Assembly: GCA_964036045.1 (NCBI GenBank)
Contig: OZ038378.1
Location: 184,760,001-184,824,000 of the forward strand
Source: Eutreptiella sp. 'Long Island Sound 2002'
Taxonomy: Eukaryota; Protista; Euglenida
Length of the DNA: 64,000 nt
Reading direction: 5' to 3'
The notes under the pieces are model-generated. The model was not told the DNA's origin, ran no database searches, and saw nothing but the letters and a program-made list of their open reading frames with translations. Shown one piece after another: positions 16,353 to 50,137 of this stretch. Position 1 is the first letter of the stretch. Every line of letters begins with the position of its first letter. Both the position numbers and the translations under genes were made by a program.

Positions 16353-16456
16353 TCAGGCAGGACAACCTGCAGAGCACAGGGCACGTCCATCAGACGCTGA
16401 AAGGCAGCCCCCGTTCTGCAACACCTCCGCAATGACCAACGCGTTGGTGAAATACA
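16353..16456 (-). CDS. CTC1: CTC1-like exon; 3' boundary uncertain
   Basis: cttgtcctttgcag acceptor at phase 1 gives DDGTALCTVYFTNALVIAEVLQ, resembling [22 protein letters not shown]. In-frame TGA at 16355-16353 if no further donor is used. Confidence 0.6.
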
Positions 16457-48100: not shown

Positions 48101-50137
48101 GAAAGCAACCGCGGGCACTGCACACCGCCGACCCCGTGCAGTGGGAGGAGCATGACACTCTGCCATTCCCTGTTCCCACAACAGCGTCCGAAGCCCCACT
48201 TCCCTGCCGGCGACGACTCCGCAGCACGGGGCACGGCGCCTCTCGTGGCTTTGAATTCACCGCCAAGCGGCGGCTCGCACATGTCAAGGGTCCGTGGCCC
48301 AAAGGCAACATGCCACACGGGGAAGTGTTCGCGACCTTTCCAAACGGCGAAAAGGTCCCCACGAACGCCTCCCCCCCACGGTAAACACAATTGGCCTGCC
48401 TCAAGGAGGCCACAAAGGACTGGTCAGGCAACAGAAGCACAGCTGTGCACTGCATTGCGAGGCACACCTCCATTTCTTGAGCCACAGCACTTGCGGCAGG
48501 GAAACTCTCGCAAGCAATTGGACGAGGGGGGGCAAAGACGGTGGATTCTGGTCGACCCCGGGGTACGCCAAGAAGCACGGCAGAGCGCCCGTGCCGTCGC
48601 GTACGTAGAGACACCCGCGGGTGGCGTCTGCGAGGTCTTGCAGTTCTGCTGTGGCATGGCAGGGGATCCCAAAGCAAATGCAGGGAAACTGCACTGCCAC
48701 AAGGGGTGGGCCAGTCTGTCACAGGTGACGCACCCGCCGTAGGGGCCGTATCACTTTGTCGGGGGGGACTTGGGGGGGGGGGGGGTTAGGGGGGTTAGAC
48801 TCGGGGGAGCGTCGGTTGGACGGGGGGTCTACAAGCATCAGGTTCAAGCCAGACGGGCAGTGCGGATGGAGCATCCACAAGCCGGACATTGTTTGGCAAA
48901 GCAGTGGGCCAGGAGCTTCGGTCGGGGGGGCTGCTTGTTCCACAACCGGAGGCCCCCGTCACAGGGCAAACGTCGACACTAGCGCGGCGGAGGGGGGCCA
49001 AAGGTCTGAGGTGGAGCAGTGAGGTCTGCTGCAGGTGTACCGTTGGTGTTGGTCGGATTGTTTGCCTCTTTTTGGTTGATTTCAGTCCTTTTGCCTTGGG
49101 AGGGGGAGGGGGGGAGGGGCTCCTTGCTCCCACTTTTCCATTCAAGCACACACCTGCCCTGCCCCGCCCTGTCATGCCCTACCCCGCTCTCCTCGGTCCC
49201 CGCCGGCCTGAATGCCAGCCTGCCTTGCTGCCAGCACAGTGATCGCACGGCCTGAAATGGGCCGCTTGGCCTGACTGTTGGTACAGCCGCCTCCATTCCC
49301 CACAGGCTGAGGAAGTCCAGCACGATGGGGAGGGGCGCATGGGCCGTGGGGTTGCGGCAAGGCGGGGCAGGCAAAGGCAGGGCAGTGCGGGGCGGGGTGG
49401 AGCAGGGCATGGCTGAGCAGGCGGGGGGGGGCCAGGCGGATGGCGACACCAGAACTGGCACCGCTCCTTTCTCATTGATGTTCAGGCACCTTCAAGTGTG
49501 GCACTCAGTAGTCCCATTTGGGGGGGGTGCGGTTCAGTTCCGGACCAGATCCCCCGCGCCGGGAACAGGGACAGAGGGGGTAGGGGGTGGGGCCATTGCT
49601 ATTCCGGTTTTGGGGGCATTTTTGAATGCCCCGTTTCATTCTGCGGATCAGGAATCTCCACAACTCCGGGGGGGTACAATTCCTTTCCTTGCTTTGCACA
49701 TGCAGCTTCGGATACAGTCGGCGAGTACTGTAGGCCAGAAAAGGAATTACTATGCATTGCCCCACTCCCGGTCAACGCTGTATGGCACGATGCCCCGCGC
49801 GCGTTCCCCCATTGGCAAAAATGCTGTTCCCATTGGCGTACGTTGGGGGGTCTGGAGGCGGGGGGTAGGGCTTGGCCCTACACGTGTCCAGCCCCCCGTG
49901 AGGCGCCCCAGTCTCCAACCAAACGATTACCGCAATCGCGCAGCCATCCCCTGCCCCGACATCTGACGTTGTGGAGGTGACACGGGGGTACAAACCACTC
50001 TGACGGAGCTGGAGGTCCGTGCACACTTGCAGCACCAAGGCACAATTCGCAGGAAAGTCCGTGTCGGTGTGCTGACGGAAGTGCTGCAGCTCCGCAAGCG
50101 ATAACAGCCGCGGCGACGGGCACCAGCGAAGCAACAC
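16353..50137 (-). CDS. CTC1: Multi-exon CTC1-like gene (CST complex large subunit, tandem OB folds); start codon and final exon(s) not resolved
   Basis: Exon chain, high to low: [50137-50027], [45818-45609], 44433-44279, 42409-42063, 39826-39734, 37789-37581, 35928-35743, 33892(or 33880)-33670, 31905-31487, 29589-29353, 28177-27946, 24746-24178, 22850-22665, 21259-20943, 17894-17614, 16456-. All junctions are GT-AG and phase-compatible, giving more than 1250 codons without a stop. Motifs recalled from human and plant CTC1 occur in the expected order. Confidence 0.75.
17215..17465. repeat. Degenerate ~10-bp tandem repeat (AGATCAACAC)n, intronic
   Basis: Direct inspection. Confidence 0.85.
17614..17894 (-). 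CDS. CTC1: CTC1-like exon (OB-G)
   Basis: LVCRVLEVLSVVL...RLVCRVDDGTALC resembles ASCHIVSVFSLQL...[12 protein letters not shown]. Confidence 0.8.
19350..19401. repeat. (TA)n microsatellite
   Basis: Direct inspection. Confidence 0.95.
20943..21259 (-). CDS. CTC1: CTC1-like exon (OB-F)
   Basis: SVVPEGVRCRFRYLLLQISKAQRPWLR resembles [25 protein letters not shown]. Confidence 0.75.
22665..22850 (-). CDS. CTC1: Probable CTC1-like exon
   Basis: ctttgctctcag|VMALTIGHEVVRIV...GTLQQ|gtcggt. 186 nt, phase 0-0 (skippable without a frameshift). Confidence 0.55.
23321..23570. repeat. (GTTAC)n/(ATTAC)n pentamer microsatellite
   Basis: Direct inspection. Confidence 0.9.
24178..24746 (-). CDS. CTC1: CTC1-like exon (OB-E)
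   Basis: VLALVMRKYRV...GFRVEARVW...AFVDFVGPAHVHCLWHIVQP resembles RLFLLCHKEAL...SFYVLGSW...VHLIFFGSSVRWFEFLHPG. Confidence 0.8.
25859..27810 (-). mobile_element. Non-autonomous hAT-derived element retaining the C-terminal dimerization domain, in a CTC1 intron
   Basis: Ends CAGGGGGGGGGGATTGCGGTC and GACCTCAATCCCCC. ORF 27085-27546 (-) reads AEWWQSRAPSPFQEMVFFLITQPTSGGDVEHFFSQ, the hAT dimerization motif. About 1 kb of extra sequence at about 25913-26940 contains a ~140-bp direct repeat. Confidence 0.75.
27946..28177 (-). CDS. CTC1: CTC1-like exon (Ser/Ala/Pro-rich linker)
   Basis: Phase 0 to 1, exactly bridging the flanking exons. gcctcag acceptor and gtctgt donor. Confidence 0.6.
29353..29589 (-). 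CDS. CTC1: CTC1-like exon
   Basis: cttcag|VACLLNRVCCIGDFEL...RRLLMVVEAVHLMP resembles LIGCLVRAERFQL...VYVQFFLADALILP. Confidence 0.75.
31487..31905 (-). CDS. CTC1: CTC1-like exon (OB-D start)
   Basis: LPFIIPLKDLL...VVGLLEVDPQTGHLLLSDATARVPVLL resembles [29 protein letters not shown]. Confidence 0.8.
31918..32060. repeat. (GC)/(GTGC)/(GT)n compound microsatellite abutting the acceptor at 31906
   Basis: Direct inspection. Confidence 0.95.
33670..33892 (-). CDS. CTC1: CTC1-like exon
   Basis: Contains VASFLEHDRC, the F..HD.C motif recalled from plant-type CTC1. Donor g|gtatgt. Confidence 0.75.
34905..35142. repeat. GGTGGTGTAAA/GGTGGTGTGA tandem repeat
   Basis: Direct inspection; mixed 10-11-bp units. 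Confidence 0.9.
35743..35928 (-). CDS. CTC1: CTC1-like exon
   Basis: AFYAYAVECYSMLHNKFSALRHHP resembles [25 protein letters not shown]. 186 nt, phase 0-0. Confidence 0.75.
35990..36195. repeat. (GA)n microsatellite, i.e. a (CT)n tract on the coding strand upstream of the acceptor at 35929
   Basis: Direct inspection. Confidence 0.95.
37581..37789 (-). CDS. CTC1: CTC1-like exon (OB-C)
   Basis: GVATLVIPECNALVLDHRFHVLL...WRLGARLCLYNVHLV...CCVYSDVKVVE matches the G.VT.V..ELD..LLL..R.GA..NVH..C..S.V.V.SF pattern. Confidence 0.8.
39734..39826 (-). CDS. CTC1: CTC1-like exon
   Basis: gtcctgcag|...HPSLPGLVHYA G|gtcgag. Spliced to the next exon it gives GLVHYAGVATLV, resembling RLLSYSGAVTGV. Confidence 0.65.
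42063..42409 (-). CDS. CTC1: CTC1-like exon (may be two exons)
   Basis: Phase 2 to 1, which bridges its neighbours. It begins RACVWRGRAHNKVKTLSF and contains GLLQHMAQIDGILEGCPQLD. Confidence 0.5.
44279..44433 (-). CDS. CTC1: CTC1-like exon (OB-B)
   Basis: cgacag|EPSFLVEV...LHIRFVDCLHMRQLLVVGFSYVFLNLWEVYAIPR|gtaagg. It resembles AYFILSL...VSIIVQ...WHRALRPGTAYVLTEL. Confidence 0.65.
45609..45818 (-). CDS. CTC1: Probable first-OB-fold exon of the CTC1-like gene
   Basis: VHVVGVVLAVQAVCPPPRRNDGAMLLCDDGIQ resembles LLLGTLTDL...CRNGSLYVRDNTG. Phase 0-0, with an alternative acceptor at 45728. Confidence 0.5.
50027..50137 (-). CDS. CTC1: Tentative N-terminal exon of the CTC1-like gene
   Basis: cccgcgcag|VLLRWCPSPRLLSLAELQHFRQHTDTDFPANCALVLQ|gtgtgc, phase 0-0. 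It resembles the CTC1 N-terminal FVSVQDLKTHQRLPCC segment. Confidence 0.4.

Follow-up and report, generated by a model that had tools for sequence, protein, structure and literature searches.

A Gene on the Minus Strand

The stretch of DNA considered here, positions 184,760,001-184,824,000 of contig OZ038378.1 from the euglenid Eutreptiella sp. 'Long Island Sound 2002' (64,000 nucleotides, referred to below as the window), carries on its minus strand a long, intron-rich gene which we regard, with a probability of roughly 0.6 and on the strength of sequence comparisons, as an orthologue of CTC1, the large subunit of the CST (CTC1-STN1-TEN1) complex. A reading of the window made without database searches (the sequence-only reading) had proposed such a gene, hidden among repeat-laden introns, and its proposals were followed up both in the window and in the assembly to which it belongs, the genome searches taking in 2.28 Gb in 2,317 contigs. 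That a single-copy, multi-exon protein-coding gene is real and lies within the coordinates first proposed, on the minus strand, is hardly in doubt.

Nine exon cores (A to G, X and Y in Table 1), which run from 50137 down to 17614 and amount to ~810 confidently coding codons in all, differ in GC content between third and second codon positions (GC3-GC2) by 0.16-0.41. The background for this measure was provided by the window's 665 stop-free segments that are 60 or more codons long, with a mean of 0.006, a standard deviation of 0.094 and a 99th percentile of 0.22. A parse for periodic coding gave the minus strand 140 bits vs 61 for the plus strand, on which the 'exons' were mirror images of those on the minus strand, and a self-trained codon model gave 341 vs 109, so that the ratio of the strands was 2.3-3.4 over the two parses. 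None of the nine cores is interrupted by an in-frame stop, and all of the confident exons are colinear on one strand and have a common codon bias and a common style of donor. Their splice sites, read by eye, are coherent, with polypyrimidine-AG acceptors and mostly AG/GTG donors (the slash marks the border of exon and intron, or a junction between two exons). The exons at 48.6, 33.7, 31.7 and 21.1 kb are each present in one copy in the 2.28 Gb. A codon model trained on the genome's own HSP70 genes was also tried and set aside, as amino-acid composition swamped its signal and the GC periodicity of third positions served better; the stretch at 46.6-46.4 kb that it favoured as an exon ('VYVTYDEYVTV') is AT-richer and does not have the bias of the gene.

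The argument originally offered for the gene, namely that GT-AG introns of matching phase link more than 1250 codons without a stop, proved to be no better than chance in DNA as GC-rich as this. When dynamic programming was bound by these rules (GT-AG borders, matched phase, introns of 200-3500 nt and no more than 16 exons), the minus strand yielded 3,757 stop-free codons and the plus strand 3,233, with comparable yields from the flanks, and because the opposite strand does so well, the stop-free chain is worthless as a criterion. Stop-free frames are everywhere since the GC content is ~57-58%, and 34.5 kb hold 282 open reading frames (ORFs) of at least 60 amino acids when all frames are counted. 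A protein of more than 1250 codons is nevertheless plausible beyond the ~810 that are confidently coding. Matching phase had been claimed for every junction; the two 3' GT-AG junctions, 20943/17894 (2 nt carried) and 17614/16456 (1 nt carried), do fit. The end points of the sequence-only reading are true landmarks, 50137 being the first base after an AG and 16353 the last base of the TGA that closes the frame. Its estimate of introns of 1.1-3.2 kb suits the adjacent confident exons but not two gaps of 8.2 and 6.7 kb, which must hold further exons and in which there are only weak candidates. Three of the seven CTC1-like motifs that it had quoted, F..HD.C, C.V..V..V.L and VDDGT, occur literally, and on the minus strand only, while the other four do not: G.L.L.D.T..P differs by one residue at 31708-31682, a W..F.G part is present at 33694-33677, and Y.G.VT..ELD..GA..NVH and PG..F..L...S were not found in a motif search of the locus.

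Resemblance to CTC1

Exons or exon ORFs were taken individually in all Pfam, PDB and fold analyses of the gene. The PDB set comprised the CTC1-like exon ORF, nine other exon ORFs and one profile of the remaining three motifs that resemble the start of an oligonucleotide/oligosaccharide-binding (OB) fold, and the Pfam set comprised 22 exon-bearing ORFs, scanned at E up to 10. In a phmmer search of the PDB, the ORF of exon B (48404-48718, minus strand) found human CTC1 at E 4.3e-5 and 26.9 bits, and the CTC1 chains 8d0b_A, 8soj_A, 7u5c_E, 6w6w_A and 8d0k_A were its sole matches below E 1, the next match standing at E 1. The similarity touches two OB sites of the human protein, residues ~113-138 and 592-651, the latter in an alignment of 60 residues. 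At the former, GCLYVRDGTGALPCFL of exon B aligns with GSLYVRDNTGVLSCEL of human CTC1. This match stands out because the nine other exon ORFs and the motif profile gave only unrelated proteins or nothing; allowing for the number of queries, we estimate its effective significance at ~0.01-0.1, which is suggestive of kinship with CTC1 but not decisive.

The motif in exon B has counterparts further along the gene. A BLASTP comparison of exons B and F found 10 of 30 residues identical, ungapped, with an E-value of 0.009, and the pattern 'hydrophobic run, D, x, T/G, hydrophobic run' (hhhxDxTG-like) also opens the exons at 45.7 and 17.7 kb. Like CTC1, the gene thus has OB-start-like modules spread from its 5' to its 3' end, at least four in number: GCLYVRDGTGALPC in exon B, resembling strands 1-3 of an OB fold, ...GAMLLCDDGIQVVL in exon core C, VVGLLEVDPQTGHLLLSDATARVPVLL in exon F, and C.V..V..V.L ... 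RLVCRVDDGTALCT in exon Y. The motifs were aligned poorly by MAFFT. In a protein atlas, the clusters nearest to exon F were OB-fold domains, at a weak 0.81-0.84 (PolD, tRNA_anti-codon and DPOA2 OB), and a second exon queried there returned nothing.

Exon B was also searched against a library of 1.84 billion representatives, which returned two 'significant' tandem-repeat proteins, one of them carrying EsV-1-7 Cys repeats. Their scores are those of six weak repeats summed, and both were rejected as artefacts. Full-sequence phmmer E-values as low as 1.6e-10 arose here purely from the addition of six weak matches to near-identical tandem repeats, which counsels care with any short-motif query of so big a library.

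TEN1 and RPA70 in the Same Genome

The sequence-only reading had suggested that the genome be searched for the partners of CTC1, and of these TEN1 was found and STN1 was not. TEN1, the small subunit that is specific to CST (Pfam PF15490, Ten1_2; cut-off 27 bits), is present at two loci, C20:31387867-31388004 on the plus strand with 44.9 bits and C5:157770991-157771122 on the minus strand with 42.8 bits, and both matches cover model positions 70-116, which make up the last exon. The two loci are nearly identical and resemble each other in their flanks as well. TEN1 thus seems to have been duplicated or to lie on homeologous chromosomes, in contrast to the CTC1-like gene, whose four tested exons are single-copy.

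The canonical RPA70 lies elsewhere, at C15:20434882-20436727 on the minus strand, where three consecutive exons cover the whole of the Rep_fac-A_C model. An exon-wise Pfam scan thus sees RPA70 in this genome, and the CTC1-like gene is not the canonical RPA70. An extra copy of the first part of the RPA70 C-terminal domain was noted on a small contig (C1998:12561-12743, minus strand). The sequence-only reading had allowed that another OB protein, such as BRCA2 or RPA1, might fit the gene better than CTC1, and no RPA, POT1 or BRCA2 Pfam domain was found in the 22 ORFs.

Points of Doubt and Alternative Explanations

The proposal of an orthologue of CTC1 is favoured by the match of exon B, by the recurrence of its motif in three more exons, by TEN1 in the genome and by the location of RPA70 at another locus, and a good many results weigh against it. 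The CTC1 score of exon B is the sum of two stretches, of 15.9 bits (independent E-value, i-E, 0.11) and 8.5 bits, which are not independent since the motifs are diverged repeats of each other, and the spurious matches of exon B in the large library arose by the same kind of summation. The nine other exon ORFs found nothing in the PDB or unrelated proteins, with best E-values of 0.22-1.5, and no CTC1, and the profile of the other three OB-start motifs had no PDB match. There was no match to the Pfam CTC1 model (PF15489) in the 22 exon-bearing ORFs, this being a model of 1,139 positions with a cut-off of 27.8 bits meant for a whole protein, and a six-frame scan of the whole genome with the same model, which had a stricter, low-sensitivity first look, was also blank. 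The single-sequence AlphaFold2 models of two exons were unusable, with predicted local distance difference test scores of 44 (exon G) and 41. The exons of the gene had no relatives in three large collections; the same libraries had no relatives of the TEN1 exon either, and since they lack even the host's TEN1, their blanks say nothing about expression of the gene. For STN1, the genome scan with PF09170 had a best score of 18.3 bits at E 2.3, with two stops, and that with PF10451 found nothing, although this model had no match in any control genome either. Domains that are poorly conserved and split among exons are easily missed by scans of this kind.

Both ends of the gene model add to the doubt. 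Exon A, which starts at 50137, is without an in-frame ATG; at the other end, the exon at 16456-16353 is without coding periodicity (GC3-GC2 0.03), and the modelled protein stops ~33 codons after VDDGT and the last OB-start motif, which would cut the last OB module short. Moreover, ~20% of the introns of E. gracilis are intermediate or non-conventional rather than GT-AG (PMC6366073), and for that reason a gene model restricted to GT-AG introns may be misjoined.

What else might the gene be? We think it unlikely, if the best of the alternatives, that it encodes a large, lineage-specific multi-OB single-strand-binding protein other than CTC1, for example a very divergent RPA70 or Teb1-like paralogue or an unrelated OB array, in which case the motif common with CTC1 would be the generic signature of OB strands 1-3. 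Such a protein would sit well with a CTC1 match that is confined to a single short region and marginal in its best stretch (i-E 0.11), with the silence of the Pfam CTC1 model, with the generic OB domains (PolD, tRNA_anti-codon and DPOA2 OB) that lie nearest to exon F in the atlas, and with a C-terminal module that looks incomplete. However, the PDB is rich in OB proteins and yet CTC1 alone was matched, at two of its OB folds; the 22 ORFs are devoid of RPA, POT1 and BRCA2 domains; canonical RPA70 is readily detected exon by exon at its other locus; and the genome's TEN1 calls for a partner of the CTC1 type.

It is improbable that the exons are real but that the 34-kb gene results from the misjoining of two or more neighbouring genes, or is a decayed pseudogene, with no product of the length of CTC1. 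The colinearity of the confident exons on the same strand, their uniformity in codon bias and in donor style, the recurrence of the OB-start motif from 5' to 3' and the freedom of the exon cores from in-frame stops all speak for one intact gene, against which stand the ease with which chance alone builds phase-matched GT-AG chains (the wrong strand yields 3,233 codons), the 8.2- and 6.7-kb gaps between confident exons with their weak candidates, a first exon that has no start codon and a last exon that has no periodicity. That there is no gene at all and the open frames are accidents of GC-rich, repeat-rich DNA, in which 282 ORFs of at least 60 amino acids make long chains trivial to build, is extremely improbable given a third-position GC bias in nine cores far beyond background, exons that are single-copy amid repeats and one exon that matches CTC1.

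Comparison with Known Proteins and Proposed Role

Human CTC1 has seven tandem OB folds in ~1,200 residues, of which the C-terminal OB modules form the STN1-binding region. It is the only family of solved structures that was matched (6W6W, 7U5C, 8D0B, 8D0K and 8SOJ, all by exon B). Like it, the candidate is predicted to be a large protein with a TEN1 partner in the same genome, it has G-x-L-x-[VL]-R-D-x-[TS]-G-x-L-x-C in exon B as the human protein has at ~113-138 and 592-651, and the gene repeats this motif along its length, the resemblance of exons B and F mirroring that of the two human sites. Unlike it, the candidate has similarity in one exon only and no exon recognised by PF15489, its exon G includes a long stretch rich in Pro/Ala, in which a 24-nt tandem repeat lies, and its modelled C-terminus, ~33 codons past the last OB-start motif, leaves a full OB-G unaccounted for. 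The CTC1 of plants (Arabidopsis) is likewise a large multi-OB subunit of CST, and since it only faintly resembles the vertebrate protein in sequence, CTC1 orthologues can be as divergent as the one proposed here. Budding-yeast Cdc13 and Tetrahymena p75/Ctc1 occupy the same functional slot, as large OB-array subunits that pair with Stn1-Ten1, have diverged in sequence and are recognisable mainly by structure; neither was matched in the PDB at E up to 10 by the ten exon ORFs or the motif profile. RPA70 (RPA1) resembles the candidate in being a tandem OB-fold binder of single-stranded DNA, and CST as a whole is RPA-like (PMC10704157), but the 22 ORFs of the CTC1-like gene contain no match to Rep_fac-A_C, REPA_OB_2 or Rep-A_N.

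As a CTC1 orthologue, the gene would span from ~51.3 or 50.1 kb to ~16.4 kb of the window, with 9-10 coding exons or more, set apart by introns of ~1-3 kb that are full of repeats, and would encode a large protein built from several OB-fold-like modules. By analogy with animals, plants and yeast, from which the steps of the CST role are drawn, this protein would join STN1-TEN1 in binding the single-stranded, G-rich overhang of telomeres, limit the access of telomerase, bring in DNA polymerase alpha-primase for fill-in of the C-strand and help to restart stalled replication. The restraint of telomerase, recruitment of polymerase alpha-primase and C-strand fill-in by CST in other eukaryotes are summarised in PMC10704157.

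The mRNA would be expected to be cis-spliced and to be capped by spliced-leader trans-splicing, as is usual in Euglena. The sequence-only reading had taken a euglenozoan host as the premise for the gene's importance, and that premise holds: an exact search of the genome for a 24-nt core of the spliced leader of Euglena gracilis yielded 3,309 copies, against 0 for the reversed control. The copies are dispersed along the chromosomes, and arrays are not their sole location.

Telomere Biology in Euglenozoa

The claim that CST has been hard to recognise in kinetoplastids, and that RPA has been proposed for its role, agrees with reviews of trypanosome telomeres, in which OB-fold end-binders such as CST 'have not been identified' or the genome 'appears to lack' them and in which RPA may cover part of the CST role (PMC8887473, PMC10704157). 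Our literature search met with no account of CTC1, STN1 or TEN1 from Euglena or any other euglenid. We would give slightly less than even odds to the proposition that the euglenid host keeps a CST complex, made up of the CTC1-like gene, TEN1 and an undiscovered STN1, in which case the common ancestor of the Euglenozoa would have possessed CST and the kinetoplastids would have either lost it or altered it past recognition.

Should it be true, these sequences would be stepping stones to a cryptic CST in kinetoplastids and diplonemids, or to the recognition of a real loss in which RPA or PolIE took over. A CTC1 candidate and a clear TEN1 in a free-living euglenozoan would replace the question of whether the Euglenozoa ever had CST by a testable one, of loss vs divergence within them, and the candidate would supply intermediate sequences for profile searches. 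Because CST is otherwise widespread, its presence in a euglenid would be expected rather than revolutionary, and if the gene is CTC1, it is a further member of a known family. There is also a practical warning: in this genome, neither ORF tracks nor exon-wise Pfam scans reveal a gene of this kind.

The Exons

The coordinates of the exons are collected in Table 1. Exon cores C and D and exons A, F, G, X and Y had no Pfam or PDB match when searched individually, and exon core E had no CTC1 in its PDB search; for exon F, a word-indexed library search and a scan of metagenome contigs also found no relative, and the tentative exon cores had no Pfam match.

Table 1. Exons and other features of the CTC1-like gene (window positions; GC1-3, GC content at codon positions 1, 2 and 3).
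Feature	Position	Strand	Frame	GC by codon position	Borders and contents
Speculative first coding exon	51219..51257	-			ATG at 51257; 13 codons; donor AAG/GTGGGG, phase 0; low confidence
Exon A, first exon of the sequence-only reading	49996..50137	-	0	GC1-3 0.66/0.41/0.80; GC3-GC2 0.39	Acceptor AG 50139-50138; donor GT 49995-94 (or 49998-97)
Tentative exon core	49288-49356	-			Periodic score within 9-19 bits
Exon B, CTC1-like	48468..48688	-	0	GC3-GC2 0.22	Acceptor AG 48690-89; donor GAG/GTGTGC (alternative 48491); single-copy in genome
Exon core C	45591..45728	-	2	GC1-3 0.78/0.46/0.74	Acceptor AG 45730-29 (or 45744-43); donor CAG/GTGGTC at 45609, or within GT run beyond
Tentative exon core	43660-43722	-			Periodic score within 9-19 bits
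Exon core D	42070..42171	-	1	GC3-GC2 0.41	Chosen by both coding scans
Tentative exon core	34030-34104	-			Periodic score within 9-19 bits
Exon core E	33641..33883	-	0	GC3-GC2 0.16	F..HD.C at 33773-33793; W..F.G at 33694-33677; possible donors AAG/GTCAGC at 33641 or ATCG/GTATGT at 33670; single-copy
Exon F	31487..31905	-	0	GC1-3 0.74/0.55/0.86	419 nt; acceptor AG 31907-06; donor CAG/GTGTGT; single-copy
Tentative exon core	29350..29418	-	1		Periodic score within 9-19 bits
Tentative exon core	25157-25258	-			Periodic score within 9-19 bits
Exon G	24178..24746	-	1		569 nt; acceptor AG 24748-47; donor GAG/GTGGCC
Tentative exon core	22641-22769	-			Periodic score within 9-19 bits
Exon X	20943..21259	-	0	GC1-3 0.68/0.50/0.87	317 nt; acceptor AG 21261-60; donor GAG/GTGTGG; ends with 2 nt of split codon; single-copy
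Intron dispersed-repeat copy	20150..20480	.			Family unit ~300 nt
Exon Y	17614..17894	-	0	GC3-GC2 0.25	281 nt; acceptor AG 17896-95; donor CAG/GTACGC; opens with 1 nt completing the split codon of exon X; carries 1 nt onward
Last exon of the sequence-only reading	16353..16456	-	2		Polypyrimidine tract and AG 16458-57; TGA at 16355-16353; phase fits exon Y

At the 5' end, the 13-codon candidate at 51219-51257 lies outside the range of the sequence-only reading and would join the acceptor at 50137 across an intron of 1,081 nt. The ORF around it has a periodic score of 17.8, a match of phase has by itself a 1-in-3 chance, and the region also resembles part of a G/C-run repeat; to see in it the first coding exon that the gene model lacks is speculative.

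Exon G has the top periodic score of the window, 76 bits. Its first half is Pro/Ala-rich and is followed by a beta-rich part, and an in-frame 24-nt tandem repeat occupies 24611-24671 on the minus strand (2.5 copies with 97% match, read as PFALTCDD PFALTCDD PFAL). This repeat in the Pro/Ala-rich stretch is possibly a linker of variable length. In the tentative core at 25157-25258, ~12 Glu codons stand in frame one after another (on the plus strand, CTC x10) ahead of a coding-like stretch of good periodicity; this core may represent an acidic exon belonging to the CTC1-like gene.

At the 3' end, it is doubtful that 16456-16353 is the true end of the gene. An internal GAG/GTGTTG (GT at 16424-23) could be the donor to a further exon downstream, and no exon of better periodicity was found at 7200-17600 on the minus strand. 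The reading VDDGTALCTV...N across the junction 17614/16456 may resemble a C-terminal stretch of human CTC1.

Introns and Surroundings

The introns are indeed laden with repeats, both a dispersed repeat and micro- and minisatellites and other tandem repeats. The dispersed repeat at 20150-20480 belongs to a family with at least 1,490 candidates at a first look, and all 40 of the copies that were scored, on many chromosomes, were 70-84% identical; a second copy inside the gene lies at 49576-49666 (family D10). The ~300-nt unit may be a family of the kind of short interspersed nuclear elements or miniature inverted-repeat transposable elements. It has a G-run and a conserved core, and similar G-run stretches recur in the introns; its translations are the recurrent 'IQKCPK...PPPPP' pseudo-ORFs that are seen in many frames.

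Upstream of the gene, and not part of it, are coding-like stretches of the minus strand at 63239-64000 and 59791-59964, one of them very acidic, which adjoin an element at 61430-61950 that the sequence-only reading had called hAT-like.

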